Source: Hyalangium minutum (GTDB lineage: Bacteria > Myxococcota > Myxococcia > Myxococcales > Myxococcaceae). Taken from it: 64,000 nucleotides of DNA. Of the stretch, positions 3,751 to 50,300 are shown in pieces (positions within the stretch are counted from its first letter, which is position 1; each line of letters opens with the position of its first letter). The translations under genes were made by a program, and so were the position numbers. Under the pieces are notes generated by a model, which saw only the letters and a program-made list of their open reading frames with translations, had not been told where the DNA came from and searched no databases. The DNA lies in assembly GCF_000737315.1 (NCBI RefSeq), contig NZ_JMCB01000006.1:1-64000 (forward strand), written 5' to 3'.

Positions 3751-3794
3751 GCACCTCTAAATGCTCCGGTCCACGCGAAAGCACAAGACGCTTC

Positions 3795-17594: not shown

Positions 17595-18609
17595 GCTCAC
17601 GCGTGCCGGGGGCGCGGTGGACTTCCTCCAGCGCCTCCGTCACCGCCTCCATCTCCGCGCCGATCTGCTCCACGCTCTGGCGCAGGCCGGCGCCCGCCAC
17701 GTCCTCGGAGGCGGCGTCCGCCGTGCGCACCCGGAGCACCTGCGTGTAGAGGTTCTCCAGCGTGTAGTAGAGCCGCGTGTGCTCCGCCTCCAGCCGTGAG
17801 GCCGCCGTGCCCAGCTCGGCCCGCTGCTGCCGCTGCTGCGCCAGCACCGACAGCGCCGCGGACAGCCGCTCCTTGGCCACCGCGTCCTTCTCCGCCTCTA
17901 CCCGCGCCGCCAGTGCCGCGTACTCGTCCGCCAGCCGGCGCTCGTCCTCCGGCGAGGACAGGGTGCGCAGCTCACGCTCGCGCCGGGCCAGCTCGTGACA
18001 GCTGCGCCGCAGCGCCTCCACCGTCTGCTCGGGTGCGTGGACCACCTCGCGCAGCACCGAGGGCCCGGAGCGGAACTCCGCCAGCAGCTTGTCGCAGAGC
18101 GCGTCCACCCGAGCCATGCGCGGGTCCGCCGCATCGAGCTCTCGCACGGAGCGGGGAAGTGGGGCGGCCTCGCGCTCGCCGGGCAGCGGCTGTGCCTGGG
18201 CCTTGCGCGACTTCAGGTGGTGGGCCGCCTGAGGGCCAAAGACGAACACGGCGATGAAGATGAGCCACCACATGTGAGGGAGGCGCAGGGCGATCAGCAG
18301 CGTCACCAGCGCGGCCCCCGCGAACATCACTCCCAGCGCTGGATTGCGCGAGGCATCCTGACGCGCGAGGTGCTCGGCACGGCGCGCCTCCCGCTCCGCG
18401 AGCTTCACCTGCCGCTTGGCCTGCTTGCGCCAGCGCTTCTCCAGCTCGCGGCGCTCGGACTGGGTGGGCAGACGGCCCATCTCCCGCACCCAAGCCTCCA
18501 TCTCCTGGGCCCGGCGCTCCTCGCCCTCGTCCAGCGCCTCCTGCAGACGGCGCAGCCGGTCCTCGCTCGAGGACAGAGGTGGGGGCGGCATGGGAGGGCG
18601 CGAGGGCAC
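17584..18609 (-). CDS. Hypothetical membrane protein with coiled-coil C-terminus
   Basis: Charged N-terminus, two hydrophobic segments (ALGVMFAGAALVTLLIAL; WWLIFIAVFVFG), long helical E/R/A-rich tail. Confidence 0.7.
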   Translation of the reverse strand: MPSRPPMPPPPLSSSEDRLRRLQEALDEGEERRAQEMEAWVREMGRLPTQSERRELEKRWRKQAKRQVKLAEREARRAEHLARQDASRNPALGVMFAGAALVTLLIALRLPHMWWLIFIAVFVFGPQAAHHLKSRKAQAQPLPGEREAAPLPRSVRELDAADPRMARVDALCDKLLAEFRSGPSVLREVVHAPEQTVEALRRSCHELARRERELRTLSSPEDERRLADEYAALAARVEAEKDAVAKERLSAALSVLAQQRQQRAELGTAASRLEAEHTRLYYTLENLYTQVLRVRTADAASEDVAGAGLRQSVEQIGAEMEAVTEALEEVHRAPGTREPIR

Positions 18610-22688: not shown

Positions 22689-23263
22689 CGCGCGGAGGAT
22701 CCTCTCGAACCGGAGCAGGCGGCCTGATGATGGCACGCTTCCTCGGGCTCTCGACATCGCCCCTCGCAGCCGCCCTCCCCAGCAGGTAGGCAGTCCCTGG
22801 GGTGTCTCACCCGGAAGCACATCCACCACCTTTTCGTTCACGGACTGATCAGAAATCCGCGCAGGCCGGAAATTCGGCCCTGGAAGCGACGACAGAGCTG
22901 GAAACTTCCGCCCCTTCGGAATACCCACCCTCATAGGGTGTTTAAAGTTGCTGCATCCTTACGACGTACATTAGTATCCGAAATAGATGAGCCAATGCCA
23001 GACATGGTAGTGGCTCTGAAGCCACCCGCACGCGGACACCCGGGAGCAGGTGATGGGAAGCACTCCGTCACGGCCGTCCGCTCCCGAGTGGGGTGGGTAG
23101 TGCGCAGCGGGCTTGCCCTTCTGCATCCTCGGGGGATGGTGCAGAGGGGGCCCGCTGCGGTTTTTTCACCGCGGAGCCACCGTTCGCTCCTCGATGCAGC
23201 GGCTTGGACTGTCTGGCCGCCCTTGGGGGCCGGTGCTATCTGGGCGGGACGTCCTCTGCTCCT

Positions 23264-25849
23264 GTGAAAGCCGCCCTCCCCGCCACCACCCGACGCGCAT
23301 CCCTGGCACCGCAGGCCCTGCTCATCGGCTCGCTGGTGGTGGCATCCGCGAGCACGGCGCTCTTCCTGGCCACGGCGCAGAGCCGGGACACCTCCCGCTT
23401 CGAGAACCAGGTCCAGGCGACCCAGGACCGGATCTTCGCGCACCTGAGCTCGGACATCGCCTTGCTGCGCGGCGCCGCGGGCCTCTTCGCTGCCAGCACC
23501 TCCGTCACCCGCGAGGAGTTCCGCATCTACGTCGAGCGGCTCGACTTGCGGCGGTATGATCCGGGGCTCCAGGGGCTCGGCTTCGCCGCACGCATCCCCG
23601 CCAGCGAGCAGGAGCACTGGTTGGAGCAGGCACGCGCCGATGGCCTGCCCTCGTTCCACATCTGGCCCGCGGGCGCTCGCGACGAGTACTACGCCATCCT
23701 CTACCTGGAGCCCCAGGACGCCCGGAACGAGGCGGCGCTGGGCTTCGACATGTTCACGGAGCCCAAGCGCCGCGAGGCCATGGAGCGGGCCTGGATGACA
23801 GGGGAGCCTGCGCTGTCGGGCCGTGTCGTCCTCAAGCAGGAGATTGATAAGGACCAGCAGGCGGGGTTCCTGCTGTACGTGCCCGTGTACCGAGGCGGGA
23901 ACATTCCCCCCACCGAGGACCAGCGCCGGGAAGAGCTCGAAGGGTTCGTCTACAGCCCCTTCCGGGCGGAGGACCTGTTCACCGGCATCTTCCCGCCCAC
24001 GCATTCCCCGCGGATCCTCTTCCGCGTCTACGACGGGACGGAGGCGCAAGCCGGGCAGCTCCTCTATGACTCGGCCTCCGCCGAGGGGGAGCCTCCGCCG
24101 AGCACGCCCCGCTTCGTGCGGACCTCGCGCCTGGAGATAGCGGGGCAGCCCTGGACGCTCGTCTTCGCCTCCTCGCCCAGCTTCGAGCGCACGCTGCTGA
24201 GTCCCTGGGTGCCCACCGTGGGAGGCGCGGGCGTGCTGCTCAGTCTGATGGTGTACGCCGTGGCGCGGTCCCAGTTCATCGGCCGGCAGCGCGCCGAGGC
24301 CAGCGAGGCCGAGCGGGCCCAGCTCCTGACGCGCGAGAAGGCCGCCCACGCCGAGGCCGAGGCCCAGCGTACCTATCTCCATGAAGTCTTCATGACGGCC
24401 CCTGCCGTCATCGGCATCTTCCGGGGGCCCGAGCACGTCTTCGAGTTCGCCAACGCCGCCTACCAGAAGGTGCTGGGGAACCGGGAGCTGCTGGGCCGTC
24501 CTCTCTCCGAAGCCCTGCCGGACCTGGCGCCGGAGATCCTCGCCGTGGCGGACACCGTCTACCAGACCGGACAGCCCCACTCGGATCAAGAGGTGCGCAT
24601 TCCCCTGGCGTATAGCGCTGGCCAGCGCGAGGAGAAGTACTGGAACCTCATTTGGCAGCCGCGCCGGAACACCGCGGGCCAGGTGGACGGCGTGCTGCTG
24701 TACGCCTTCGAGGTCACCGAGCAGGTCCTGGCGCGCAAGCTGGTGGAGGCCAGCCGCGAGGAGGCACGGCGGAGCGCGGAGCAACTGCAGACCATCACCG
24801 ACACGCTGCCAGCGCTCGTCGCCTATGTGGATGCGCAGCAGTACTACCGGTTCGCGAACCGGGCGTATGAGACGTGGTTCGGCCGGAAGCCCCAGGAGGT
24901 GGTGGGCAAGACGATCCAAGAGTTCGTTGGAGAGAAGATCTACGCGCGCTTCCAGGAGCCCATCCTCCGGGCCCTGGCGGGCGAGACCGTGCGCTTCGAG
25001 GGCGAGCTGCCCCGGAAGGACGGGCAGAAGCTCTTCATCCAGTCCAGCTATATCCCGGAGCGGGATGAGCACGGGCAGGTGCGTGGCTTCGTGGTGTTGG
25101 CCTTCGACATCACCGAGCGCAAGCAGGCGGAGGAGGCCGTGCGCAACGCCGTGCGGCTGCGCGATGAGTTCCTCTCCGTGGCCAGCCACGAGCTGAAGAC
25201 GCCGCTGACGCCCCTGAGCCTGAAGCTGCAGACGCTGGCGCGTGATGCGGCAGCGCAGCCGGACTCGGCGTTCGTGCTGAAGGTCCGCACATCTGTGGAG
25301 GCGGGGCTCAAGCAGCTCAAGCGGCTGTCGGACCTGATTGGGGATCTGCTGGATGTGTCGCGGATCACCTCGGGGCAGATGAAGCTGTACTGGGAGCCGG
25401 TGGACTTCGCCGCCGTGGTCCGTGAGGTGGCCACGCGGCTGGAGCCCGAGGCGGCCCGGGCCGAGTCCCGCCTCATGCTGGAGCTGCCAGCGGAGGTGCC
25501 AGGCCGCTCGGACCGGATGCGGCTGGAGCAGGTGGCGGAGAACCTGCTGACGAACGCCATCAAGTACGGGGCGGGCAAGCCGATTCATGTCCGGCTGGAG
25601 GCGAGCCCCGAGCGCATCGCCTTCACCGTGAAGGACGAGGGAATTGGCATTGCCCCCGAGAACCAGGCGCGCATCTTCGAGCGGTTCGAGCGCGCCGTGT
25701 CCGAGCGGAACTACGGCGGCCTGGGGCTGGGGCTCTACATCACCCGCACCATCGTCGAGGCCCTGGGAGGCACCATCCGCGTGAAGAGCGAGCCCGGTCA
25801 GGGCGCCTGCTTCACCGTGGAGCTTCCCCGGGAGCCCGCGGTTTCTTAG
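23264..25849 (+). CDS. CHASE + PAS sensor histidine kinase
   Basis: TM, CHASE (YLEPQDARNEAALGFDM...RREAMERA), TM, two PAS domains, VASHELKTPL H-box, NLLTNAIKY, DEGIGI, GLGLGL. Start placed at GTG 23264. Confidence 0.92.
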   Translation: MKAALPATTRRASLAPQALLIGSLVVASASTALFLATAQSRDTSRFENQVQATQDRIFAHLSSDIALLRGAAGLFAASTSVTREEFRIYVERLDLRRYDPGLQGLGFAARIPASEQEHWLEQARADGLPSFHIWPAGARDEYYAILYLEPQDARNEAALGFDMFTEPKRREAMERAWMTGEPALSGRVVLKQEIDKDQQAGFLLYVPVYRGGNIPPTEDQRREELEGFVYSPFRAEDLFTGIFPPTHSPRILFRVYDGTEAQAGQLLYDSASAEGEPPPSTPRFVRTSRLEIAGQPWTLVFASSPSFERTLLSPWVPTVGGAGVLLSLMVYAVARSQFIGRQRAEASEAERAQLLTREKAAHAEAEAQRTYLHEVFMTAPAVIGIFRGPEHVFEFANAAYQKVLGNRELLGRPLSEALPDLAPEILAVADTVYQTGQPHSDQEVRIPLAYSAGQREEKYWNLIWQPRRNTAGQVDGVLLYAFEVTEQVLARKLVEASREEARRSAEQLQTITDTLPALVAYVDAQQYYRFANRAYETWFGRKPQEVVGKTIQEFVGEKIYARFQEPILRALAGETVRFEGELPRKDGQKLFIQSSYIPERDEHGQVRGFVVLAFDITERKQAEEAVRNAVRLRDEFLSVASHELKTPLTPLSLKLQTLARDAAAQPDSAFVLKVRTSVEAGLKQLKRLSDLIGDLLDVSRITSGQMKLYWEPVDFAAVVREVATRLEPEAARAESRLMLELPAEVPGRSDRMRLEQVAENLLTNAIKYGAGKPIHVRLEASPERIAFTVKDEGIGIAPENQARIFERFERAVSERNYGGLGLGLYITRTIVEALGGTIRVKSEPGQGACFTVELPREPAVS

Positions 25850-26144
25850 GCCAGTTCTTGAGCTTCATGAGCTGGAAGACGCCTGCGGCCACAAGCCCCC
25901 CTACAAAGAGGGAGACGAGCACCTGCAACCAGAAGAGATTCTTCTGGAGGACGTGGTCATCGAAGCACTTGGCCTCTCTGATGGCGATCTCGCGAGTGAG
26001 CGAGTCGAAACCGCGCACGTAGTCCCAGTCTTCGGCGATACGCCCGCACACCAGCTTCATTGAGGCCAGGAAGGTCGCAACAAAGACCACCTCGAACGTG
26101 GCTAAGGTCCAGAGCGGCCGCACCAGTCCATAGAGCCTGTGCAT
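25812..26144 (-). CDS. Small two-TM protein, candidate immunity protein for the upstream Rhs C-terminus
   Basis: ATG lies 3 nt after the Rhs stop. Two hydrophobic segments. Overlaps the convergent kinase 3' end by 38 bp. The function is inferred from position only. Confidence 0.55.
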   Translation of the reverse strand: MHRLYGLVRPLWTLATFEVVFVATFLASMKLVCGRIAEDWDYVRGFDSLTREIAIREAKCFDDHVLQKNLFWLQVLVSLFVGGLVAAGVFQLMKLKNWPKKPRAPGEAPR

Positions 26145-26147
26145 GTC

Positions 26148-29100
26148 TCAGCCTCCGGACAAATCGGAACCATGCCTCCATCCCTCTGGCAACTCGAGCT
26201 CCATGATGCTGAGCAACTGCTCCAGTTCTTCTTGCGCCGCCTCCTCATCATAGAGCCCGGCGACATGCTGAATCTCCGCGATGAAGGCAACCTTTCGATT
26301 ATTCGTGTTGGAGCCCCGGAAGAGATCTGCGCTCAGCAAGATCTCCCTACCTCGGGCCCGCCCGATGTAATGCTTGGCCGAAGACTCGCGGGACTGGCCG
26401 AAATCCACGACATAGATCTCCGCTCGCTCCGCTGCTGCTGTGAGAGCGGCGAGGCGGTCAGGATCGAGCATTCCGTTGGGATCGGAGCTAGGTATCTCGG
26501 TTCGACAGGTCTCCACGTCTATGTCAACGGCCCTCAACCGCTTGAGGTTATTGAAGTCTTCGTTCTCCCCCATGCGGCGCCCCACGGTCCCGGCGAAGAT
26601 GAAAGCAGCGACGATGATGATAATGACGATCGCCAAGCCCACCAGGAGACCGAACTTCCCGCTCGGGTCGACGTAAGCCGTGGGATTGCCACGGACGTAC
26701 TGATAGATGTTTGCTCCATCTACCATCCCAAGCCTGTCCGGCTGAATCCACCGCCCTAGCTTCGGATCCATGTAGCGGTCGCGGTGGTAGTTCAGCCCGG
26801 TCGAGTCGTGCTCGCGCCCTGTGTACCCGAACGCCAGCATCGGCCCGCTCCCACTCGTGGTCCTCGCCCCATAGGCATCGTAGGAGTTCGTCCTCACGAC
26901 GGCTCCCGTCTGATCCGCGATGGCCACAACGGAGCCGAGCGCGTCCGTGAGGGGGGAGTAGGTGCTGCCTGCCTGCTGGAAGCTGAGGATCTCGTCAGTG
27001 GTCTGTGGGTGGGTCAGGTAGCTCGTCGGGGTGGGGCTCGTGCTGGAGAACTCCTGGAGAACGGTCGCACCGTCGAGCAGGTACTGGGTCGAACCCGCTG
27101 GCGTCGTCTGCTTGGTACGAAGCCCCGTGGCGTCGTACTCGAAGGTATGCAGCTCTCCTGAAGCCAGGGTGACCTGCCGCAACCTGTTGTCGAGATCCCA
27201 GCCATACTGCTTCACCAGTTGGCCTGCCTTGGTCTCGCTCAGCAGGTTGCCATTGTTGTCGTAACCGTACTCAGTGGCCACGCCGCCCTCGAAGCTCCTC
27301 TCGAGCTGGTTGAAGGCGTTGAAGGCGCTGTTCACCTGCCGGTTCGTCCCGCCAGTCACCTCACGGAGCGCGGTTCGGTTTCCCAGCAGGTCCAGCGTGT
27401 ACCTCACGCTGCGCTGAGTCCCGTAGTCCACTCCCGTCAGCCGGTCGGATGCGTCATAGATGTAAGACTCTCGGGTCCCATCCGCGAGCGTCTTGGAGAG
27501 CCGGTTTCCTCCCGCATCGTACGTATAGGAGCTGCCAGCCACCACCGCGCCTTCCTTGGCATGGACGATGCCAAGCAGTTGGCTCGCGGCATCGTAGGAG
27601 TACGTCGTGGCGATGCCGTTGGAGCGTGTGATGCGCGTGCGGCGTCCCAGATCGTCGTAGCTGATCACCGTCCGCTGGCCGGCGCTGTCCACGGCCTGCC
27701 TCAGCAGATTGAGCGCGTCATAGGAATAGTGATGTTCCAAGCCCGCACTCGTGACGCTCGTGCGATTGCCGTTGGCGTCGTAGGTGTAGCGGAGCGTCCG
27801 TCCCAGGCTGGCGTCGATGACCTCCTTCACACGGCCCAGGGCGTCGTACTCGAGGGTTCGTGCATGGGTCCCATTCTTCTCGAGCGTCCGGCGCCCCGCC
27901 TCGTCGTAGTCGTACTGGTAGGTGCTCCCATCCTCGAAGGTCACGCTCTTCAGGCGCCGGTTGCCGTCGTAGGCATAGGTGGTCCGCCTGCTATTGCCAT
28001 CCACCTTCGCTGTGCGATTGCCTACGCCGTCATACTCGTAGCTCGTCACCACATTGAGGGGGTTCTTCTCCCACTGCAGCCTGTTGGCCAGGTCGTACTG
28101 GTACTGCGTCCGCTGGCTCCCTGCGGTCACGGACGTCCGGTTCCCTCGCCCGTCATATCCGTAGGTGATGGACTGATCGCCTTTGGTGACCCTCTCCAGC
28201 AATCCATGGGACCCGTAAGCGTACGTCGTAGGCGCCTGGCCAAGCTCGGAGCTGGCCTTGATTCTCCCTGCGGTGTCGTACTCGTACCGGCTCTCACGCT
28301 TCAGCGAGTCGACCTCGGACAGCACGCGGCCCATCCTGTCGAAGTCACGCCGGTACAAGCCTCCTGTGGCATCGACCTGAACGCAGGGCTGCGTCGTCAG
28401 CTCGGCACAGTAGCCCAGGACGGTACTGGCTCCGTTGGCCAGCACCGTCTCCACGTGCCTTCCGGCGGCGTCATAGCGCATCACCGTCCGCGCGTTCCGG
28501 GCATCCACCAGCGCCACCACCCGGCCATTGGCGTCGTACTCCGTCCGGCTCACCCCATTGAGCGCATCCTCGACGGACGTCACCCGCCCCACCGCGTCGT
28601 ACGTGTACGTCGTCACTGCCAACAAAGGGTTCTTCGTGGTGAGCCGGTGGCCTTCGGCATCGTAGGTGGACTCGAAGCGAGCATTCAGCGCGTCCACCAT
28701 CGCGGTGACCTGACCCGCGGCGTCTACCTCGAAGGTGTGCTTCTTGTTGTCGCTGTCCTTCGTTTCGGTGATGTATCCCGCTGAGTTGAAGGTCAGCGTC
28801 GTGGTCACCTGCTGGGGATCCGTCATCGTCAGGGGGAGGCCTTTGCTCCCATAGGTCATCCGGGTCACCGCAGGCCCCGGCTTCGTGAAGGTCTCCAGCC
28901 GTCCGCGCGCGTCGTAGCCGTAGCTCGCCACCCCGAGGCCATCCGTCCGGGTCTTCAACCGGCCTGCCGTGTCATAGGTGTTCGTCACCTTGGGCCGCCC
29001 CGTTGCCTCCACCGTGAGCACCTGGTTGAACGCCGTGTCATAGGTGTACTTCGTCACCCGACCATCGGGATCCCGCTGCTCGGTCATGTTGCCGCGCGTG

Positions 29101-32570: not shown

Positions 32571-32585
32571 GAGGGCTGTGTCTTT

Positions 32586-35500
32586 CTACGGGCAGGAGAG
32601 CGGAGCCGGGACCGTCTGCGGCCCCGGCGAGAGCACGAGGGTTTGCGAGTTCGTGAGCGTGACCTGGCGGCCCACCACGGCGCCTCGCAAGCTCGTGTTG
32701 TTGCCGAGGATCACGTGGGTCAGCGGCGCGTAGATCTGCATCGCCGCTGTCGACTGGTTGAGCACGGAGACCGCCTGCCCCGTCGAGGCACTGCTCACGA
32801 GGAGGAGCGAGGCCCCTGTACCGGGTGCCGCCCCCAGCGTGGACTGATTCGAGACCGACACGGAGCCGGAGACGAAGAGCTCGACGCTGCCTCCCGAGGC
32901 AACCTTTAGGGTGGCCCCCCCTGTCAGCACCAGGTGATCCAGCAGGAAGCGGCCCGACGGCAAGGTGAGGGTCTCCTGATCGATCTCGAGTCCTCCTCCC
33001 ACGAGGAAGGGCGAGATGTCCGGATCCGCCTGGAGCAGTGCGTTGTCGTTCTGCTGCCCCACCTTCTGGAACCAGCGCGTCAGATCGTAGCCGCAGCTGC
33101 ACGGGGTGGGCGGCGAGGACACCGTCTCATCCCCGCCAGTGGCCTGCGCACCCGTGCCAAGCACGAGCTGCCCGCCGTGGTAGATCCGCCCGCCCACGCT
33201 CGCCAGGCCCCCCAGCTGGGTGAGAGTGCCAGAGACAACGTCACCGCTGACGGAGCTGCTGTCGCCCATCAGCACGGATCCATGGCTCGCCACCGAGGCA
33301 GGACCGCTCAACCCCACCACCTGCGCGCTGTCCTGAATCGACAGGCTGTCGAGCGCGCAGGCCGCGAAGAGGAACCGCGGACGCGCCTGCAACACCGTGA
33401 AGTGCACCGTCACCGACGACAGGTTGCCGGCCATGTCCCAGGCCTTGACGCGCAGGGTGTGGGCACCGAGCGCGGTCACCGGGGTGCCGCTGTCGACGAG
33501 GACATTGTCCAGCACGCCCTCCAGCGGCTGGAGCGGCGAGGCATCGGTGGCCGTGAATACCGGAGTGAAGGAGGTCCCCAGCGCGCCCTCGGACACTCCC
33601 GTGACAGAGAGGACCGGCGGCGTGAAGTCCAAGGTGAACGAGACGGTGCGCACCGTCTGATTGCCCGCGAGGTCCACGGCTGTCACCACCAAGACATGCG
33701 TCCCCTCGGCCGTGACGAAGGTGCCAGACGTGAACGTCGCTCCATCCAGCGTTGCCGAGACCGAAGCGAGGTTCGTGTCGACGACGTCGAACGCGGGCGC
33801 GACCTCGTGGTTGATGTATTGGCCGTCCTTGACCCAGTAGACCCAGACTTCAGGCGGGGTGAAGTCCAGCGTGAACTCGATGACACGCTCGGCCACATTG
33901 CCGGCCCCATCCACCGCGCGGAGCGCCAGCAAGTGCGTCCCCTCCGTGCTCACCGCGGTCCCCAGCGTGAACGGCACCCCATCCAGGGTAGCGACCAGCG
34001 TTCCAGGGTGAAGCTCCTGCACCGTGACCCCCGGGGTGAGCGGAACGGAGCTGTACTGGCCATTCACGACTCCCGTCACCCCCAGCACGGGCGGTGTGAA
34101 GTCCAGGCTGAAGGACCGCGTCTCGCTGACAGCATTGCCCACCGCGTCGGACGCCTGGACTACCCACAGGTGATCGCCCTCCGCGTTGACCTCCGTCCCG
34201 GACGCGAGCGGCGAGCCGTCGAGCAGGGACGTCACCGTGCCCGGATGCGGCTCCGACACCGAGTAGGACAGGGTGACCGGCGTGTTGAGCAGCGCCCCAT
34301 GGCTGGGGCCATCCAGGCTCAACACCGGTGCCGTCTGGTCGATGCTGAAGTGGATGTCCACCGAATGGCTGTTCCCGGCACCGTCCACCGCCGTCACCGC
34401 CAGCAGGTGGGCGCCCTCCGCGGAGATGGCGGTTCCCAGGGAGAAGGGCACACCATCGAGCGTCGCCACGACGCTGCCCGGGTGCGCATCCTCCACCGTC
34501 ACACTCGGAGTGAGCGGCACCGCGCTGACCTGACCCTCGGCGACTCCGGTGATTTCCACCTGAGGAGCCGTGAAGTCCAGGCTGAAGGCGCGCGTCTCCG
34601 TGGTGCTGTTGCCCGCCAGATCTACCGCCGTCACCGTCCAGAGATGATCCCCCTCCCCATCCACGAACACTCCGCTTTCCACGGGCGCGCCGTCCACTGT
34701 GGCCACGAGCGTTCCCGGGTGCTGCTCCTGCGCCTGGAAGGACAAGGTCACGGGCGTGTTGAGCAGCGCCCCGTGAGCCACGCCCGCCAACTGCAGCACC
34801 GGCGGCGTCAGGTCGATGGTGAACGACACCGACCGCTGACGCTGGTTGCCAAAGGCGTCCGCCGCGCTCACCTCCAGCAGGTAGCTCCCCTCCGCCGTCA
34901 CGGCCGTGCCGCTGGTGAAGGCATTGCCATTGAGCGTGATGGTGGTACTCGACAGGTACGGATCCGTGACTGTGATTTCCGGAATGACCTGCGTGGGTGA
35001 GAACTGTCCGTCCGTCACTCCCGAGATGGTGATGACCGGCGGCTCCTGATCGGTGGGCATCTCCGCCGTCACGACGAGCCGATCCAACGTCTGGCCGTCG
35101 AGCTGGGCGACCAGCACCTTCTGCCGCGCGTCCAGCTGCGAGGTGGGCAGGGACAGCACGATGTCCTGCGAGCTGCCAGGCGCCAGGCTCACCTGGGTCG
35201 AGGCCGTGGCCTCCTGGCCCAGCAAGGGCGTGTCCAGCAGCAACACGCGCAGCAGCCCCTCCACCGTCTCTCCGCTCGTGTTCGTGAGGAGGACGTGGGT
35301 TTGCAGCGGCGGGCCGATGGGGAAGGGGCTCGCGGCGGAGAGCTGCGCGGTGACGACCCGCGCCGGAACAATGACGACCTTCCAGAGCACCTGGTTGCTC
35401 GCGATGACGGTCCCCTGCGCGTCCCGCAGTTCGGCCCGGACGCGGTAACTGCCCGCCTGCGCCGTGGGCGAGACGGAGAAGCGCTCGGCGATGTCATGGA

Positions 35501-38500
35501 AGGCTCCGGGCGCGAGCTCCGAGATGGCCCACTGCCCCGACGCGAGCAGGGTCCCCGTCACATCCTCGAACACCACCTGGAGCGTCCCTGCGGGCAGCAC
35601 GGCATTGCGCCCCGTGTTGCTCACGCGCATCTGCGCGAGGACCGTCTCCTCTGGGCCATAGCTCTCGCGATCGGTCACCAGCCCCAGGCTGGCCACGGCC
35701 TCCGCGGTGAGCGTGAACGGCACCGTGCCGACTGCCACCGGCCGCCCCCCCTCAGTCACCTGGATCCGCAGCGAGTACAGCCCAGGCCCGAAGGCCCCCG
35801 TGTTCCAGCTCAGGGAGGTCTGGTACTCGGCTCCTCCTCCCACCACCAGCCGGGGGCTCGTTGCCAGCGTCGCCACGAGCGCGCCGGCCGGACCCTGGAT
35901 GGCCGCATCCCATGCGAGCGTTCTCCCGCGCGGGCTCTGGTTGGCCAGAAGCACCGTGAACGAGACCGGCGCCGCAGGCCCCACCACGCCAGGGCTGGCC
36001 GTCCCCGACACCACGAGCAACGGATCCTCCACGGGGAGGTTCACCTCCCGCACGTTGTTCAGCTCGCTGAACTCCGTGACGATGCCCTGCGGATCCACCT
36101 CGGCATGGATGAGGGTGCTCGCCTGCGGAGCGGTGATGCGCGCGGTCAGGACCGTGCTCTCCGCCGTCAGCAGCGGCGGCACCTCTAGCAAGAGCTCCGG
36201 CTGCCCGGGGACCTCGATGCTCAACAGCGTCCCGGGAGAGGGACTGCCGCGGTTCAGAACCGTCACGCTCACGGTGACTGCTTCCCCCGCGTAGGCCGGC
36301 GAGGGTGAGGCGCTCACCGCCTGCACCGTGAAGTCCGGCATCGCCGCGGGCATCGACTCCACGGTGAACACCGCCTCGTTGTTGAGGCGCTCCTGGTCCA
36401 GCGTCACCACCTGAGGATCCGCGATGACCCGGTACCCATGGCTGCCTGTCAGCGCGATCCCCGTCACCAGCACATGCGCCTCGGCGCCCGGCTGCAGCGC
36501 GGGGAGCGCCGCCGCGCCAAAGAGGGGACTGTTGGCGCCTCGTGGCCCGTCCCAGGCCTCGACCGTGCTGGCTCCACAGGCCTGCGCACCCTGGTTCCGT
36601 ACTGTGACATCCAGCGTGAGCGCCTCTCCCGTCTGTGGCAAAGGAGGCTGGCTGGAGAACTGCGCTGTATCCACGGCCAGATCACACCCCTGCGTTCCTG
36701 GGAGGACGTAGACACGAGCCGAACCGATGTTGTTCTCCCGCCCAGACTCCTCGATGGCGCCATCCGCGTTGGCGACCACATAGAGGACGTGCTCCCCTTC
36801 CGGATACGCCACCCAAGGCAGGGAGAGGGTCGCCACGCCCGTACGTGGGGCCAGGGGCCCCGCCGCGACAACGTCCGCCAGGTGCCGCCCACCCGCCGTG
36901 GGGTCTCCATCGTAGAGGGCCACATGGACACCGCTCGCGGCCACACCTCCCACGTTGCGCAGAGTGACGGTGACCGTCTGGATCCCTCCCACCGTGGGCG
37001 ATTGCGGCGACACCGTGATGTCCGCGTTGCGGACGGAGAGATCCGCCATCAGCGTGGCCGGCTCCACGTCGAACTGCTGGTTCCATGTGTTGTGGGTCGT
37101 CCACCAGCGGTAGTCGCTCCCCAACCGGAGGTCCGCCCCAACCTGCCCCTTGCGAATGGAGCGCGTCGGCCACAGTGCCGGCTGCTTCTTCCAGTGCACG
37201 CTGGAGAAGATGAGCACCTCGCCTCGGCCATACTGCGGGTGGTCCCGAAGCTGGGTCGGTGGCGCGGTGCCCTCTATGAACGGCATCGCGATGTCCGCGT
37301 GGCCATCCGCGTCGATATCGACGACCACGGGCGTGTGCTCCGGGAAAGAGTAGTTGGCGCCGGTCTCGGGCTGCATCTGAGCCGGGAAGGTCTCCAGCAG
37401 CTCACCCGTACGGCCGTCCTGGATGACGGGGGGCGTCAGTAGCCCGGCGAAGATGGCCTGGGGCCGGCCCTGGCCCAGCACGTCCGCCAACACTCCGTTG
37501 AACGCATCCACACCGGACCTGCCTCCTCCCGTAGCGCACACCGTGCAGAACAGCTCCTGCGACCACAGGGGCAGCAGGTCGGGAGTGAACGCCCCCGTGA
37601 TGCTGGTGCCGCCATTGTTGGCCAGCGTCACATAGGCGAGACCATCCTGCCGCAGCGCTCCCGCGCTCAGGAAGTACTCCCGCGCCTCGAAGGGAGTTCC
37701 TGTCTGGACCTGCTGGCCGGTGATGAGATCTCTCGCCACGAGATTGTTGCGGAACCTCGGGATGATCACCTCCGCTTTTCCATCCAGGTTGAGGTCCACG
37801 ACCCCGGCCCCGATCGTCCCCGTCGGCTGCGACACCTGCCAGCGGACAGTCCCTTGCGCGCTCACGAGCGCATAGAGGCCGATCTTGGACGCCAGCACCT
37901 CGTTCTGGCCATCTCCGTCCGCATCCAGGACGGTGGCCGTGTACCCGAGCTGGCAGGTGGCCGAGCCGACAGTGGCCGTCCAGAGGTCCGTGCCATCCAC
38001 GCCCGAGAACGCTCGGAGATCCTGGGTCCAGGCCACGATGTCCCCCACCCCATCTCCATTCAGATCTCCCAGGCCCAGCGCGTAGCTGGACACGGTGGAG
38101 GCAGAGCAGCCGGAGGTACCCGCGAGGACTCGCTTCCACTTGAGCGTCCCATCGGGCCGCAGCGCGACGAGCTCATAGTTGTTCGAGGTATCCTTCGAGT
38201 AGGCCACGATCTCCCCCGTTCCATCGCCGTCGAGGTCGGCCGTGGCGACGTCGAGTGTCGTGGTCATGGGCGTATAGGACCAGAGCTTGCTCCAGGAGCC
38301 GTCCGTCCCCTGCTGGAGCAGCGAGACGAACTCCTTGGAGACCGTCCCCGTTACGGTCCTGTGGACGAGCACCATGTCGGGCTTCGTGCCGCCGAGGAGC
38401 GGGGCGATGCGGATCTCGCTCCCCTGCACGTAGGTGCCCGCGACGCCCGTGTCCACGATGGCCTTGAGGAACAGATGCCGCCCGGCCACGTTGTTCACGG

Positions 38501-40979
38501 GCGCGCTGTCGCGGGGATAGGTCCCCGCCACCCGCGCGTAGAGCTCCACGGGCCCCTCGGTTCGCACCCAGTCGAAGGCCGCCGTCACCTCTCCTTGCGC
38601 AGGCACCTGGATGGGGGCCTCGCCCAGGAGGCGGCCGAGATGGGAGAGCGGAGACCCCTGCCACCACTGCAAGACAGCCCGCCCCTCGGTGGTGGAGACA
38701 TTCCGCACACGCGCGGTGACCACCACCTTCTCTCCTATCTGGGCTCCCAGTGGGGTGAAGTGCATCTCCTTGGCGGCCACCACGAGGTCCGTCGTCGCGC
38801 TGCCCGGTGTGAGCTCCGCGCAGTTGTCGTTCTCGTTCACCTCGGGCACCTGGTTCTGCGGATCCACGCAGGCCCGCAGGGCCACGGGCGTTCCCGCGGG
38901 GGGAACCTGAAAGCTCCCCAGCAGGACGGCGGTGGCGCTGCCATGCCGGGCGACCGCATCCCTCTCGGCCCAGACCGTCCCGTCCGCGACGTTCATCAGC
39001 CGCACCGAGGTGGCCACATCCTGCGCTCCGTCGTTGATGACGGACAGCGAGTACTCCACATAGCGCCCGGGAAGCGCCGAGCTGTTGGAGCTGGAGAGGC
39101 TGCCCGCGACGAGCTCGCTGGCGGCGCTGTCCGACATGACGGTCATGGCCAGCGTCCGCTGGTTGTTCGTCCGATCCGGATCCGACAGCCTTCCATCCGG
39201 GTCCACCGCGAGCGTGTAGGAGGCCGGAACCAGGGAGGACAACGTGAACGACACCGGCACGGTGGTCTGGCCTGGAACGAGCGGGAGTAGCTGCTCGGCG
39301 ATCCGCTCGCCCGAGCGGAAGACCACGACCGGGACCTGGCTGGCCGCCGTGGTGTACGCATTGCGGATGTTCCCCTGGAGGACAAAAGGCTGGCCCGGGA
39401 CGATCTGCCCAGGCGAGGGCACGAAGGACATGGGGGTCGTCACCTGCAGATCCACCGCCGCGCCCGTGCCTCCGTAGTAGAAACGGAAGGCTTGGTTGTT
39501 CTGCTCGTCTGCCTCCGGCAGCGCGCCCGCCGGATCCACCCGTGCATAGAACGCCACGGGCCCCGTGGCCGTGGGCAGGGGTACATCGAAGGTCAACGAC
39601 CCGAGCGCATTGGGCTGGAGCCCCGCCGAGAGCACCTCGCTGCCCAGCAGGGTTCCACCGTTCCCTGGAGCGCCCCGGAAAAGTTCCACCGTTACCGCCT
39701 GGGGCAGCGGAGAGCCCAGGTTGAGCACCACCACCTTCACCAGGAGCCGGCCCGGCGCCCCCGGGTAGAACTGCAGACTTCCTCCCGAGATGGCCAGATC
39801 GTTCTCCACCCGGACCCGCAGCGGAGCCGAGGCCGTGTTGTTGCCCTCGTCGATCTCCAGCACCTGCCCCTCTGGATCCACCTGCGCGATGACCTCGTAG
39901 CTGCCCGCGAGCTGAAGCGTGGGCAGTGTGGCGACGATCGTCGCCTGCGCTCCCGGGGCCAGCGCTGACAACGACACCTGAGCCAAGGTGACCGCGGCAC
40001 CGCCCGCCAAGGGCCGGGCGACGAAGCGCACGGGGATGGCCAGGGCCGGGACACCCGACCGGTTGCGGATGCTCAGGGTTGCCTGGAGGCTCGCGCCCTG
40101 AAGCGGCGTGGGATCCGCCAGCACGAGCTGAGGCCGCCCGCGATCGTCCGTCATCACGTGCCAGTCCGGCGCCGCCTCGCGAAGAACCGACAGGGCACGG
40201 GCCGTGAGACGCGTGCTCCCCTCCCAGCTCCCATCCGCCTGCTGGGCGGCCAGGAGGTAGACCCGTCCCTCCTCCCGCGCCTGCGAGTGCTCGAAGGGAG
40301 CCCCCACCAATCCCTGGAGCGCGGCCACGGTGTCCTCGACTGTGCCGAAGGAGCCGTCAGGCCGCTGCATCGTCATGAGGCACGCGGTGGCCCGGCTCAG
40401 CGCGAGGTTCGCGTCTGGGATCCAGGGGTGGAGGCGCAGCGCGGAGATGGCAGAGGCCGTCAGCGCCGCGGACGCGGCGTTGTCGGCAAAGGCAAAGCAA
40501 CCATCGGGGCGGGCCTTTGCCAGCAATTGCGCCAGCGCGCCTTCAGGCCTCCCGAAGGGGTTGGTGCTCAACTGGGGCGAGAGGATGAGGCTCAGCGCCA
40601 GGTGGAGGGCATCCGGTGCCTCGAACCCCGGCCCCTGGGTCGTGAGCGTTTGTGTGCCCCGGAAGAATGGGGACTGCCGAAGCGCCAGCGCGGTGCGGAT
40701 TTCCAGCTCGGAGTCGAGCAGGAGCGGCTGGAAGGCCAGGTAAATCTCCGCACTCCGGGCTGCATCACTGGCCCCCAGGCCGTGCGCGCGAAGCGCCTCG
40801 AGCGCCTCCGCTGTCACGAGCGTGGGTTCTTCGCTCCTCAGCTCACCGAACGCCCCCGTCGGCCCCTGCATGCTCTGCAGGAACTGCAATCCCTGCGCGA
40901 CAGGTTCCGCGCTCGCAATCCCTGGCATCCACACCAGGGAAAGTCCACCCATCAGAGCCCACACCCATGACAGCCGCAC
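32586..40979 (-). CDS. 2797-aa secreted surface/adhesin-like protein (alpha/alpha-toroid repeats, ~8 CARDB, FG-GAP propeller, 7 Ig-like repeats, C-terminal beta-solenoid-like domain)
   Basis: Signal peptide ending GIASA. Prenyltransferase/QW-like repeats (QGPTGAF, ARPDGCF, QRPDGSF, QQADGSW). CARDB-type ends (EGNN, EQNN, RTNN, ENDN, PVNN, RENN, RLNN, ELNN). DLDGDG/DLNGDG/DADGDG/DIDADG Ca-binding motifs. Seven D.TPP...AVD.AGN repeats. Confidence 0.88.
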   Translation of the reverse strand: MRLSWVWALMGGLSLVWMPGIASAEPVAQGLQFLQSMQGPTGAFGELRSEEPTLVTAEALEALRAHGLGASDAARSAEIYLAFQPLLLDSELEIRTALALRQSPFFRGTQTLTTQGPGFEAPDALHLALSLILSPQLSTNPFGRPEGALAQLLAKARPDGCFAFADNAASAALTASAISALRLHPWIPDANLALSRATACLMTMQRPDGSFGTVEDTVAALQGLVGAPFEHSQAREEGRVYLLAAQQADGSWEGSTRLTARALSVLREAAPDWHVMTDDRGRPQLVLADPTPLQGASLQATLSIRNRSGVPALAIPVRFVARPLAGGAAVTLAQVSLSALAPGAQATIVATLPTLQLAGSYEVIAQVDPEGQVLEIDEGNNTASAPLRVRVENDLAISGGSLQFYPGAPGRLLVKVVVLNLGSPLPQAVTVELFRGAPGNGGTLLGSEVLSAGLQPNALGSLTFDVPLPTATGPVAFYARVDPAGALPEADEQNNQAFRFYYGGTGAAVDLQVTTPMSFVPSPGQIVPGQPFVLQGNIRNAYTTAASQVPVVVFRSGERIAEQLLPLVPGQTTVPVSFTLSSLVPASYTLAVDPDGRLSDPDRTNNQRTLAMTVMSDSAASELVAGSLSSSNSSALPGRYVEYSLSVINDGAQDVATSVRLMNVADGTVWAERDAVARHGSATAVLLGSFQVPPAGTPVALRACVDPQNQVPEVNENDNCAELTPGSATTDLVVAAKEMHFTPLGAQIGEKVVVTARVRNVSTTEGRAVLQWWQGSPLSHLGRLLGEAPIQVPAQGEVTAAFDWVRTEGPVELYARVAGTYPRDSAPVNNVAGRHLFLKAIVDTGVAGTYVQGSEIRIAPLLGGTKPDMVLVHRTVTGTVSKEFVSLLQQGTDGSWSKLWSYTPMTTTLDVATADLDGDGTGEIVAYSKDTSNNYELVALRPDGTLKWKRVLAGTSGCSASTVSSYALGLGDLNGDGVGDIVAWTQDLRAFSGVDGTDLWTATVGSATCQLGYTATVLDADGDGQNEVLASKIGLYALVSAQGTVRWQVSQPTGTIGAGVVDLNLDGKAEVIIPRFRNNLVARDLITGQQVQTGTPFEAREYFLSAGALRQDGLAYVTLANNGGTSITGAFTPDLLPLWSQELFCTVCATGGGRSGVDAFNGVLADVLGQGRPQAIFAGLLTPPVIQDGRTGELLETFPAQMQPETGANYSFPEHTPVVVDIDADGHADIAMPFIEGTAPPTQLRDHPQYGRGEVLIFSSVHWKKQPALWPTRSIRKGQVGADLRLGSDYRWWTTHNTWNQQFDVEPATLMADLSVRNADITVSPQSPTVGGIQTVTVTLRNVGGVAASGVHVALYDGDPTAGGRHLADVVAAGPLAPRTGVATLSLPWVAYPEGEHVLYVVANADGAIEESGRENNIGSARVYVLPGTQGCDLAVDTAQFSSQPPLPQTGEALTLDVTVRNQGAQACGASTVEAWDGPRGANSPLFGAAALPALQPGAEAHVLVTGIALTGSHGYRVIADPQVVTLDQERLNNEAVFTVESMPAAMPDFTVQAVSASPSPAYAGEAVTVSVTVLNRGSPSPGTLLSIEVPGQPELLLEVPPLLTAESTVLTARITAPQASTLIHAEVDPQGIVTEFSELNNVREVNLPVEDPLLVVSGTASPGVVGPAAPVSFTVLLANQSPRGRTLAWDAAIQGPAGALVATLATSPRLVVGGGAEYQTSLSWNTGAFGPGLYSLRIQVTEGGRPVAVGTVPFTLTAEAVASLGLVTDRESYGPEETVLAQMRVSNTGRNAVLPAGTLQVVFEDVTGTLLASGQWAISELAPGAFHDIAERFSVSPTAQAGSYRVRAELRDAQGTVIASNQVLWKVVIVPARVVTAQLSAASPFPIGPPLQTHVLLTNTSGETVEGLLRVLLLDTPLLGQEATASTQVSLAPGSSQDIVLSLPTSQLDARQKVLVAQLDGQTLDRLVVTAEMPTDQEPPVITISGVTDGQFSPTQVIPEITVTDPYLSSTTITLNGNAFTSGTAVTAEGSYLLEVSAADAFGNQRQRSVSFTIDLTPPVLQLAGVAHGALLNTPVTLSFQAQEQHPGTLVATVDGAPVESGVFVDGEGDHLWTVTAVDLAGNSTTETRAFSLDFTAPQVEITGVAEGQVSAVPLTPSVTVEDAHPGSVVATLDGVPFSLGTAISAEGAHLLAVTAVDGAGNSHSVDIHFSIDQTAPVLSLDGPSHGALLNTPVTLSYSVSEPHPGTVTSLLDGSPLASGTEVNAEGDHLWVVQASDAVGNAVSETRSFSLDFTPPVLGVTGVVNGQYSSVPLTPGVTVQELHPGTLVATLDGVPFTLGTAVSTEGTHLLALRAVDGAGNVAERVIEFTLDFTPPEVWVYWVKDGQYINHEVAPAFDVVDTNLASVSATLDGATFTSGTFVTAEGTHVLVVTAVDLAGNQTVRTVSFTLDFTPPVLSVTGVSEGALGTSFTPVFTATDASPLQPLEGVLDNVLVDSGTPVTALGAHTLRVKAWDMAGNLSSVTVHFTVLQARPRFLFAACALDSLSIQDSAQVVGLSGPASVASHGSVLMGDSSSVSGDVVSGTLTQLGGLASVGGRIYHGGQLVLGTGAQATGGDETVSSPPTPCSCGYDLTRWFQKVGQQNDNALLQADPDISPFLVGGGLEIDQETLTLPSGRFLLDHLVLTGGATLKVASGGSVELFVSGSVSVSNQSTLGAAPGTGASLLLVSSASTGQAVSVLNQSTAAMQIYAPLTHVILGNNTSLRGAVVGRQVTLTNSQTLVLSPGPQTVPAPLSCP
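33400..35055 (-). repeat. Seven ~79-aa Ig-like repeats within the giant protein
   Basis: Repeated (D)xTPPV...G...G...V.A.D.AGN...F.(L/I)D. Units 2 and 4 share HGALLNTPVTLS and EGDHLW; units 3 and 5 share VPLTP.VTV...HPG..VATLDGVPF.LGTA. Confidence 0.85.
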
Positions 40980-43370: not shown

Positions 43371-43373
43371 CGG

Positions 43374-50283: not shown

Positions 50284-50300
50284 GGTCCAGGCTGGGAGCG

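Follow-up and report, generated by a model that had tools for sequence, protein, structure and literature searches.

Polymorphic toxins are usually explained through a firing machine, whether T6SS, CdiB, T7SS or Tc. A class that carries an inactive transglutaminase (TG) domain and has Sec as its only export route was listed in 2012, and how its members reach their targets is a standing question. The same question is raised by a locus of Hyalangium minutum DSM 14724, which lies within a 64-kb window (the whole stretch of DNA analysed here) and consists of three minus-strand genes in one orientation: a giant gene encoding a predicted exported, multi-domain protein of 2797 aa (32586–40979), a TG-Rhs polymorphic toxin gene of 2140 aa (26148–32570) and a candidate immunity gene of 110 aa (25812–26144). 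We propose the giant, a near-constant companion of such toxins, as a specific candidate, open to experiment, for the delivery part that this class has lacked.

The ORF calls place 15 bp between the giant and Rhs genes and 3 bp between the Rhs stop codon and the 110-aa ORF, recovering the co-oriented genes and gaps reported in a preliminary description of this DNA. The giant gene starts with GTG and the other two with ATG; NCBI calls an Rhs gene of identical length on JMCB01000006.1 and also calls the 110-aa gene. GC3 is 0.86 in the giant gene, 0.82–0.94 over most of the Rhs gene, falling to 0.70 across its last ~140 codons, and 0.78 in the 110-aa ORF. The actual downstream neighbour of the cassette is a convergent CHASE/PAS histidine kinase gene on the plus strand (23093–25849), the 3′ end of which shares 38 bp with the 110-aa ORF. 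The preliminary description had further noted signal sequences on both large proteins, an Rhs protein devoid of PAAR or VgrG-type regions, and a neighbourhood free of T6SS, Tc-toxin and CDI transporter genes, all of which we also find. By direct reading, both proteins begin with short hydrophobic segments, scoring under the threshold for a TM anchor, that are followed by AxA-type sites (MRLSWVWALMGGLSLVWMPGIASA/EP and MFQTKKVWFQTTSSLLTLVTLQFLCMGELQRAQA/AE); the predicted signal peptides span aa 1–24 of the giant (40908–40979, ...GIASA/EP) and aa 1–34 of the Rhs protein (32469–32570, ...RAQA/AE). The hydrophobic N-terminal segment is kept across 23 aligned giants and is present in 13 of 13 aligned TG-module family members. 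Pfam and NCBIfam gave no PAAR, VgrG, TcdB/SpvB or TPS domain in either protein, and the other ORFs scanned within the 64-kb window included no T6SS, Tc or CdiB/TpsB component and no vgrG, hcp, tss or chaperone (EagR/DUF1795) gene.

Behind its signal peptide, the Rhs protein has an Ala/Leu/Arg/Glu-rich region (aa 35–242, 31845–32468; A 16%, L 14%, R 12%, E 9%), a putative helical stalk by its composition; a matching region of variable sequence was found in all aligned homologues. The constant TG module follows (aa 243–829, 30084–31844), delimited by two family alignments and an AF2 model (pLDDT 92, pTM 0.91) and ending in the motif GYILENPVTGEGAYLIGE. Pfam places Transglut_core at aa 276–347, and PDB structure matches within the module are limited to this TG core (3isr, animal TGases). 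At the triad positions, G309 and R379 stand in place of Cys and His, with the Asp kept as D406; from these residues, the domain is predicted to be catalytically dead, which is compatible with a binding role without proving one. A Gly/Ser linker, read in the translation, and DUF6531 (together aa 830–933, 29772–30083; PF20148 at aa 861–933, E=4e-20) lead into the RHS/YD repeat shell (aa 934–1896, 26883–29771), which matches RHS_repeat, YD_repeat_2x and RHS_core (PF05593, E=1e-95 over 14 stretches; TIGR01643, E=2e-72). The Rhs-associated core (26655–26882; TIGR03696 at aa 1897–1971) closes with PTAYVDPSG (aa 1963–1971), the PxxxxDPxG release motif that the preliminary description had attributed to such shells; by analogy with Rhs/TcC proteins, autoproteolytic cleavage would occur there.

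The variable C-terminal domain (CT; aa 1973–2140, 168 aa, 26151–26654) opens with a strongly hydrophobic helix read as TM (~1973–2001), followed by a predicted globular domain of ~140 aa. It has no Pfam family, and matches none of 83 related loci; a search of 1.84 billion representatives gave only two real relatives, of which one forms the tip of a different Rhs fragment (P0018, 53% identity). Its AF2 model (pLDDT 82) gave weak, non-significant matches to zincin-like folds (E about 0.3), and the sequence reads AEIQH where a zincin has HExxH. The 110-aa protein, with two TM helices predicted from hydropathy (~11–37 and 69–95), was assigned to no family by Pfam, NCBIfam or PADLOC and has one relative besides itself in the collection searched (81% identity); its position and TM content make it the candidate immunity protein. 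GC and GC3 are lower across the CT and the 110-aa gene, and both are nearly unique in databases, so that the toxin tip is, judged by composition and rarity, a recent acquisition. An invariant and non-toxic C-terminus had been named in the preliminary description as an outcome that would speak against its reading; among relatives that have the core in common, the C-terminus varies.

The architecture of the toxin has a precedent. A computational listing of toxins with an N-terminal inactive TGase (Zhang, de Souza, Anantharaman, Iyer & Aravind 2012, Biol Direct 7:18; PMC3482391) gives the order signal peptide, TGase lacking catalytic residues, RHS and variable toxin, puts the class on the Sec/T2SS route and proposes a surface-anchoring role for the TG domain. 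The window Rhs protein has every feature of that list, namely a hydrophobic N-terminus, a TG domain, triad loss, RHS repeats and a variable toxin, with a predicted helical region of ~200 aa separating signal peptide and TG module. Beyond the text of that paper, we find that the TG ‘domain’ belongs to a larger constant module, multi-domain and ~590 aa long, that most family members are Rhs-free and that about one-third have an intact triad; a term search of the paper gave no mention of a CARDB, FG-GAP or macroglobulin-like partner gene. The preliminary description had called the system a candidate undescribed one: for the TG-Rhs toxin architecture, published in 2012, this does not stand, whereas the partnership of giant and TG toxin does appear to be new.

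The giant, recognized by its ORF, GC3 and domain matches, is built from a series of modules with approximate boundaries. Its N-terminal alpha/alpha-toroid domain (40155–40907) consists of prenyltransferase/squalene-cyclase/TED-like repeats: QxxDGxWG-type repeats align over 23 giants, homologous giants match SQHop_cyclase_C, Prenyltrans and TED_complement in this domain, and it has weak PDB matches to transcobalamin and squalene cyclases. A first CARDB array (aa ~290–900, 38280–40112) is supported by the alignment of giants and by Pfam CARDB, which matches the giant with E=1e-60 in 5 stretches. It is followed by an FG-GAP beta-propeller region (aa ~900–1300, 37080–38279; FG-GAP and FG-GAP_3 at aa 915–983), also kept in non-myxobacterial giants, and by a second beta-sandwich array of CARDB/DUF11/MG2-like type (aa ~1300–1950, 35130–37079; CARDB best stretch 1548–1645, DUF11 1321–1353, MG2 1767–1854). 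Big_13/OmpL47-type Ig-like repeats, visible in the translation as units of ~80 aa, occupy aa ~1950–2520 (33420–35129) and match Big_13, Big_3_3, GspA_SrpA_N and barrel_OmpL47. The C-terminal DUF7305 region (aa ~2520–2797, 32589–33419; PF23981 at aa 2685–2779) gave no PDB sequence match; among related loci PF23981 is matched by the L001 and L002 giants only and is not in the Archangium giants (L007, L009), L014 or non-myxobacterial giants. Collinear orthologues adjoin TG-toxin genes in all five of these loci, and those in Archangiaceae and Myxococcaceae MAGs are collinear at 36–41% identity. No recognizable anchor (TM helix, lipobox, sortase signal or beta-barrel) was found in the giant's sequence.

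Two lines of evidence tie this giant to the TG toxin. First, in genomes drawn from many phyla, Firmicutes among them, 57 of 61 assessable loci have a related giant next to the TG-toxin gene; a giant-like ORF had to lie no more than 5 kb away on the same strand, and absence was scored only where each side had 6 kb of flank or more (18 loci were too short and were left out). The four loci in which the giant is missing despite good flanks are L006, where a 1078-aa protein without known identity takes its place, L032, L042 and L072. The jackhmmer profile of the giant includes promiscuous CARDB and Ig domains, and 53 of the 57 matches begin within the giant's N-terminal domain. Second, the reverse test, on metagenome loci seeded by the giant N-terminus, recovered an upstream TG-module gene in all 32 loci that had 4 kb or more of upstream DNA and in 19 of 21 with 2–4 kb. 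A lack of co-conservation of the two large proteins had been put forward in the preliminary description as counting against the pairing; they are co-conserved in both directions. Going by gene neighbourhoods, the giant and the TG module are conserved partners rather than chance neighbours, and we read the synteny as showing functional coupling of giant and TG toxin, short of docking.

The family as a whole bears the marks of a toxin–immunity system, in which module and giant stay constant and toxin and immunity gene vary. We found 525 loci, in monoderms and diderms, among about 186,000 genomes that each represent a species; the cassette is known from Nitrospirota, Desulfobacterota, Chloroflexota, Firmicutes, Verrucomicrobiota, Myxococcota and further phyla, and hosts include Pelotomaculum, Thermincola, Syntrophomonas, Bacillaceae, Chloroflexota, Acidimicrobiia, Nitrospirota and Geobacteraceae, as well as Actinobacteriota MAGs. 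Two alignments of the TG module both stop at GYIxxDPxTGxGxYxIsG, beyond which the sequences are wholly divergent: the 80 C-termini that follow the module sort into 40 BLAST clusters, with Pfam matches to NlpC/P60 (11), CHAP (6), CDI_toxin_EC869_like (2) and, once each, CdiA_C, phospholipase A2, Peptidase_C92 and SLT. Rhs cages are also among the parts found behind the module, and are absent from 66 of the 76 genome-scan loci (L008–L083). L006, L046, L053 and L076 have orphan CT cassettes in which the final 50–110 aa of the TG module are kept. The ORFs between toxin and giant are as diverse as the CTs (54 ORFs in 40 clusters), and where two loci resemble each other in these ORFs (14 pairs), their CTs are alike in 13 (Fisher p=6e-20, with no correction for shared ancestry). 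Whether C-termini and immunity genes swap between strains had been suggested as a check; this clustering and co-variation across related loci indicate that they are swappable. Over 87 TG modules, the triad reads G-H-D in 39, C-H-D in 27 and G-R-D in 14, with Gly at the Cys position in every Rhs fusion; since about a third keep Cys-His-Asp, an enzymatic role is possible for the family as a whole.

We consider it very probable that the locus is a polymorphic toxin–immunity cassette with a functionally linked giant, and fairly likely that this cassette is Sec-exported and T6SS-independent, with the giant as its conserved partner. In the mechanism that we propose, Sec would carry both large proteins over the inner membrane, and the TG module would link the toxin to the giant by binding and not by enzymatic action. 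The giant would be an extracellular scaffold or adhesin that binds the target; the narrower assignment, in which it is the scaffold or adhesin on which the TG module docks, is plausible and falls a little short of probable. Contact with the target would free the cargo from the RHS cage, the freed cargo would act probably at the target membrane, and the membrane-embedded 110-aa protein would shield sibling cells. Gene structure, domains, loss of the catalytic residues, the contrast between a constant TG module and variable CTs and adjacent ORFs, and the two-way synteny are observed; that TG module and giant bind each other, that the complex sits at the surface, how it crosses the outer membrane, that contact is needed, and what the CT and the immunity protein do are inferred. 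A bolder reading, which we regard as possible and rather doubtful, is that TG toxin, TED-like/CARDB giant and variable immunity gene make up an unrecognized Sec-dependent delivery system in which the giant is an obligatory partner and the TG fold, dead or live, is the coupler: a new class beside CDI, T6SS-Rhs, Esx/LXG and WapA.

The giant resembles the alpha-2-macroglobulins (A2Ms; YfhM/ECAM, YfaS) in being a large exported protein with beta-sandwich arrays and a TED-like alpha/alpha-toroid, and homologous giants match TED_complement and MG2 weakly. Unlike A2Ms, it has its toroid at the N-terminus and lacks a bait region, and its sequence contains no CxEQ thioester motif and no match to A2M, A2M_BRD, MG10 or bMG10; we therefore rejected membership in the A2M family, the MG2 and TED-like similarity being weak. 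An A2M- or TED-like activity could still make the giant a general self-protection or holding factor that sequesters or shields the toxin in the producer's envelope until release, with the small variable ORF giving toxin-specific immunity and the giant perhaps also guarding the envelope. We consider this unlikely. The TED/prenyltransferase-like N-terminal domain and the arrays recalling MG domains suit it, yet the thioester and bait region of such factors are missing, the domain order differs from that of A2M, and repeats of the CARDB, FG-GAP and Ig kinds are typically found in adhesins. Many CTs degrade the envelope (NlpC/P60, CHAP, SLT, phospholipase) and would be a hazard to the producer's own periplasm or wall, and a constant giant among varying toxins would meet that hazard in general fashion; against this, a chaperone of 2,000–3,000 aa is expensive and the Rhs cage already shields the cargo. 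That neither an anchor nor an outer-membrane component was found also agrees with a holding factor.

Another of the known systems close to the family is CdiB/CdiA/CdiI. In both, a sharp junction motif lies between a constant delivery region and hypervariable CTs, there are orphan CT cassettes and cognate immunity genes (here candidates by position), and they have CdiA_C and the EC869-like nuclease in common. The TG cassette differs in having no TPS domain, FHA repeats or CdiB/TpsB transporter in the proteins and window scanned, and receptor binding, which in CDI lies within the toxin filament, would here sit on the separate giant. These shared features bear on another alternative, that the cassette supplies a lytic weapon, secreted or carried on vesicles, for predation or against distantly related prey, and is no contact-dependent means of kin discrimination; the giant would bind prey wall or matrix and gather the enzyme or toxin at that site. 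H. minutum is indeed a predatory myxobacterium, but most hosts of the family are non-predators (Nitrospirota, Geobacteraceae, Chloroflexota, Firmicutes). The recognizable C-termini are mostly cell-wall hydrolases, whose Sec export and release would require no special injector and which toroid, CARDB and FG-GAP domains could bring to glycans; the CDI-type nucleases, however, must reach the target cytoplasm, and CT/ORF co-variation and orphan cassettes are hallmarks of toxin–immunity systems directed against relatives. We judge the lytic weapon improbable.

WapA of Bacillus subtilis and Streptococcus suis is a Sec-exported, T6SS-independent Rhs/YD polymorphic toxin with its immunity encoded downstream. 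The window locus is like it in its signal peptide, Rhs-caged variable toxin and downstream candidate immunity gene; WapA is retained by wall-binding repeats and has neither a TG module nor a giant partner gene. Because the window host is a diderm, unlike the Gram-positive hosts of WapA, the outer-membrane step needs a separate explanation, and we identified no outer-membrane translocation component in the window.

With T6SS Rhs effectors and the TcB/TcC cocoons, the Rhs protein shares the RHS/YD shell, the DUF6531-type plug, the Rhs core with PxxxxDPxG and a predicted encapsulated CT. It differs from Tc toxins in lacking SpvB and TcdB_toxin_midN, and no TcA partner is among the neighbours scanned; with diagnostic domains and partner genes absent, we rejected assignment of the Rhs protein to either Tc toxins or CDI. 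Many Gram-negative Rhs toxins are T6SS effectors, and the absence of a T6SS here is judged from a 64-kb window, yet it is highly improbable that the protein is ordinary cargo on a VgrG/PAAR encoded elsewhere and the giant an unrelated upstream adhesin, because a signal peptide replaces PAAR/prePAAR, VgrG and T6SS genes are absent in 64 kb, phyla without T6SS carry the same N-terminal module, and the adjacency of giant and TG gene is kept in both directions across phyla. Firmicutes, Chloroflexota and Actinobacteriota are not known to have a T6SS, and the occurrence of the cassette in these phyla, together with the missing PAAR/VgrG and the T6SS-free window, makes T6SS dependence unlikely, in line with the delivery without T6SS first proposed for this locus.

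Cultured carriers, among them the type strain H. minutum DSM 14724, Geotalea and Pelotomaculum, make deletion, competition and localization experiments feasible. The family is also an untapped source of toxin and immunity domains, including the rare CT of the window with its predicted TM helix.

The same-strand genes immediately upstream of the cassette (41139–51281) form a separate alpha-2-macroglobulin cluster. The true A2M gene at 43374–48080 has the A2M hallmarks that are absent from the giant, and it is not co-conserved with the TG-Rhs/giant cassette. Elsewhere in the family, the whole cassette occurs in tandem, with three copies in L058 and two each in L053 and L022.

By exact protein match, the window (~69% G+C) belongs to contig JMCB01000006.1 of assembly GCA_000737315.1, which derives from the myxobacterium Hyalangium minutum DSM 14724T (PMC5441343). 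In the window, three co-oriented genes occupy the minus strand in the order giant, toxin and immunity candidate: a 2797-aa giant (32586-40979), a 2140-aa transglutaminase-fold (TG)-Rhs toxin (26148-32570) and a 110-aa candidate immunity ORF (25812-26144), with gaps of 15 bp and 3 bp between successive genes. These ORF calls reproduce the positions and spacing of the preliminary description, and codon-position GC backs the coding status of all three genes. Domain searches likewise recovered the CARDB, FG-GAP and Ig-like repeats that it had attributed to the giant, and found Transglut_core, DUF6531, RHS repeats and an Rhs-associated core in the second protein. The searches gave no PAAR, VgrG, TPS or Tc domain, and no T6SS, Tc or two-partner secretion genes occur among the other window ORFs scanned. 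The true 3′ neighbour of this set is a convergent CHASE/PAS histidine kinase gene (23093-25849, plus strand), which codon-position GC favours over an 885-aa minus-strand ORF (22931-25588), a candidate for a further gene of the operon that we rejected on these grounds. At their 3′ ends, the kinase gene and the 110-aa ORF overlap by 38 bp (25812-25849), as they do in the NCBI annotation. A scan of 25.5-41.4 kb for promoters and terminators gave nothing above shuffled expectation, and an anti-phage defence reading was discarded, as PADLOC gave no match.

The TG-Rhs protein opens with a signal-peptide-like N-terminus (residues 1-34) and a presumably helical region rich in Ala, Leu, Arg and Glu (35-242). 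The family-conserved TG module that follows (243-829, delimited by alignment) closes with the motif GYIxxDPxTGxGxYxI-GG; C-terminal to it are a Gly/Ser linker, DUF6531 and the RHS shell, then the predicted release motif PTAYVDPSG (1963-1971) and a 168-aa variable C-terminal domain (CT; 1973-2140). Nowhere is the protein more hydrophobic than in the first ~30 residues of the CT. The AlphaFold model of the TG module is confident (pLDDT 92, pTM 0.91). Only the TG core resembles solved structures, namely 3isr and animal transglutaminases (Foldseek against the PDB), and the remainder of the module had no PDB match by Foldseek or by profile-versus-PDB sequence search. At the catalytic triad, Gly309 stands in place of Cys and Arg379 in place of His, with Asp406 retained; judged by these replacements, the TG fold of this protein is catalytically dead and not an enzyme. 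The protein classes as an Rhs polymorphic toxin and as one of the inactive-transglutaminase toxins described by Zhang et al. (PMC3482391), and not as a T6SS Rhs effector, Tc toxin or CDI protein.

When the first 860 residues of the TG-Rhs protein were used as query in a word-indexed protein search, few relatives came back; in these, the shared N-terminus is joined to RHS repeats, NlpC/P60, a CdiA C-terminal toxin or nothing recognisable. Scanning a single genome of each species for the pattern gave 525 loci in many phyla, among them Nitrospirota, Geobacteraceae and other Desulfobacterota, Chloroflexota, Firmicutes (Pelotomaculum, Thermincola, Syntrophomonas and a Bacillaceae MAG), Verrucomicrobiota, Acidimicrobiia, Gammaproteobacteria and Myxococcota. 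For the family survey we sampled 79 non-redundant loci, in which the 80 regions that follow the module fell into 40 BLAST clusters. Pfam families in these regions include NlpC/P60 (11), CHAP (6) and EC869-like CDI nuclease (2), with CdiA_C, phospholipase A2, C92 amidase and SLT occurring once each. Members fused to Rhs turn up repeatedly in Chloroflexota, Gammaproteobacteria, Omnitrophota, Acidimicrobiia and Myxococcota; most members, at 66 of the 76 genome-scan loci, lack Rhs. Downstream in several loci, orphan ORFs consist of the last 50-110 residues of the TG module followed by a different CT (L006, 14786-16603; L046, 13287-14435; L053, 13527-14594; L076, 269-1354), reminiscent of orphan CT cassettes at CDI and Rhs loci. 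With its constant N-terminus, sharp junction, hypervariable tips and orphan cassettes, the TG family is, by signature, a polymorphic toxin family. In one related locus, from an Archangiaceae MAG (L001, 10001-16294), the TG-Rhs gene is split into two ORFs (1050 and 1012 aa) with about 100 bp between them, reflecting either a disrupted gene or an assembly error.

Among the 87 modules of the related loci (L001-L083), the triad reads Cys-His-Asp in 27, G-H-D in 39 and G-R-D in 14. Every Rhs fusion has Gly at the Cys position, and the intact modules come mostly from Nitrospirota-type loci. Judged by these residues, inactivity does not extend to the whole family, and one third of its members may act as enzymes, for example in processing or cross-linking.

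The tips do not vary alone. Outside myxobacteria, 54 ORFs lie between toxin and giant and form 40 clusters, as diverse as the toxin tips themselves. Across 696 locus pairs, similarity between these ORFs is nearly confined to pairs with similar CTs, which account for 13 of the 14 similar-ORF pairs (Fisher p=6e-20, with shared descent ignored). Because the intervening ORFs are diverse and co-vary with the CTs, the general layout of the cassette is, as read from these comparisons, a constant module, a variable CT, a variable candidate immunity gene and a constant giant.

Several lines of evidence support the giant as a component of this cassette. First, in MAGs of Archangiaceae, Archangium and Myxococcaceae, the gene immediately upstream of the TG gene encodes a giant of 2618-2718 aa that is collinear with the window giant over most or all of its length, at 36-41% identity; the genes further upstream, beyond the giant, differ among these loci.

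Second, the co-conservation of the two large genes, the testable part of the preliminary description, was borne out by counts in both directions. In the forward count, which used an iterated profile of the window giant and accepted same-strand matches within 5 kb or less of the TG gene, 57 of 79 loci carry a giant-related ORF; 4 loci lack one although each of their flanks is 6 kb or longer, and 18 loci were too short to judge. All but 4 of the 57 matches (53) begin in the N-terminal domain, a more specific marker than CARDB. An alignment of 23 giants offered no stretch conserved enough for seeding, and the reverse count was made by a metagenome scan that took as seed the first 600 residues of eight more closely related giants from outside the myxobacteria; its scope is that clade, to the exclusion of the myxobacterial giants. 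Where 4 kb or more of upstream sequence was available, 32/32 loci had a same-strand TG-module gene upstream, as did 19/21 loci with 2-4 kb.

Third, the linkage crosses phyla, and whole cassettes are also duplicated in tandem. In Pelotomaculum, a giant precedes a TG-toxin tipped with an EC869-like nuclease, and a JGI (Joint Genome Institute) metagenome contig carries, in order, a TG-NlpC/P60 gene, a 356-aa ORF and a 2680-aa giant with a squalene-cyclase-like/prenyltransferase-like N-terminus, CARDB arrays and FG-GAP. Tandem arrays hold three TG-toxin/partner pairs in L058, a Nitrospiria contig (array at 1814-21887), and two each in L053 and L022; the partners there are short giant-like proteins of 500-935 aa, and identity between tandem copies is 47-59% for the TG modules and 69-76% for the partner N-termini. 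From these comparisons, the reading of the giant as the partner of the TG-toxin, and not a chance neighbour, holds. At one giant-less locus (L006, 6787-10023), a 1078-aa protein without a Pfam family overlaps the start of a TG-CdiA_C toxin gene and could serve as partner in place of a giant.

The partner core comprises a signal peptide and an alpha/alpha toroid, ~250-300 aa long and carrying QxxDGxWG repeats, together with CARDB arrays and an FG-GAP propeller. The N-terminal toroid of the window giant (about residues 25-275) has no CxEQ thioester; likeness to alpha-2-macroglobulin is loose, and the defining features of that family are missing. Among related loci, the C-terminal DUF7305 region is matched only by the giants of L001 and of another close relative, L002; we found no PDB sequence match and no paper for this region, and no recognisable anchor in the giant sequence.

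The toxin tip itself is rare. The CT belongs to no Pfam family and has two real relatives among 1.84 billion representatives, one of them the tip of another Rhs protein. Its model (pLDDT 82, built from three sequences) has weak, non-significant fold similarity to minimal zincins, with the motif AEIQH and not HExxH; given the non-significant matches and incomplete motif, we kept a zincin-like identity as a lead only. The 110-aa ORF, which has a single relative in 5.8 billion clusters, encodes two predicted TM helices. The leading TM helix of the CT and the membrane location of the candidate immunity protein suggest that the CT may act at the membrane. GC and GC3 dip across the CT and the 110-aa ORF: G+C is 0.62-0.64 at 26000-30000 versus ~0.69 elsewhere, and GC3 within the Rhs gene goes from ~0.9 in the N-terminal module through ~0.82 in the repeats to 0.70 in the CT. 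The dip fits recent acquisition of the toxin tip, and composition suggests that the repeats, tip and immunity gene differ in history from the TG module.

The toxin architecture is not new: Zhang et al. described the inactive TG toxin, assigned it to a Sec/T2SS class and proposed that the TG domain serves as a surface anchor through peptide binding (PMC3482391). The original label 'undescribed' therefore fails for the toxin and stands for its pairing with a giant, on which we found no paper in the literature searched, itself not proof of absence. We regard the locus as a member of a known toxin class with a novel tip, and the cassette as new in being a presumably Sec-dependent polymorphic toxin with a dedicated giant partner. 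Its logic is CDI-like (constant delivery region, junction motif, variable CT with immunity, orphans), and as a putatively Sec-exported Rhs protein the toxin recalls WapA; unlike in CDI and WapA, the presumed binding function resides on a separate giant polypeptide.

We tentatively propose that the TG-toxin/giant cassette may be a new delivery system that spans phyla and in which the giant is an obligatory partner. Both large proteins would be exported by Sec and the TG module would bind the giant. The giant, whose toroid, CARDB, integrin-like propeller and Ig repeats are all of kinds suited to binding ligands, would serve as an extracellular scaffold or target-binding component. The Rhs cage would free its cargo at PTAYVDPSG, and the 110-aa protein would shield siblings. 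Two other readings are each unlikely: the giant could be a general holster or shield for the exported toxin, or the cassette could be a released predatory or lytic complex that is not contact-dependent. T6SS delivery of the Rhs toxin, with the giant a coincidental neighbour, is essentially excluded: the cassette is present in lineages without a T6SS, and neither the protein nor the window has a T6SS hallmark.

Elsewhere in the window, a WD40-repeat protein of >1252 aa (1-3756, minus strand) runs off the window start, and a 341-aa ORF (17584-18609, minus strand) has a weak Flagellin_C match (E=3e-5, just above the Pfam cut-off); myxobacteria are not known to be flagellated, and the match may be spurious. 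Directly upstream of the giant, five tightly packed minus-strand genes (41139-51281) form a separate alpha-2-macroglobulin (A2M) cluster, which resembles the E. coli yfaP/T/A/S/Q type. They encode a DUF2135 and Glucodextran_B protein (50301-51281), a DUF1175 protein (49687-50352), a 558-aa protein without assigned identity (48077-49753), a 1568-aa alpha-2-macroglobulin with MG2, BRD, A2M, TED and bMG10 domains and CxEQ at residue 1088 (43374-48080), and a 743-aa protein without assigned identity that contains GSTLKPF (41139-43370). We rejected this cluster as part of the system and consider it an independent neighbour, because none of its five proteins (0/5) has a homologue in the 83 related loci; the close relatives L001, L002 and L007 also have differing upstream neighbours. 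It is nevertheless curious that an A2M cluster adjoins a TED-like giant and a TG-fold protein.
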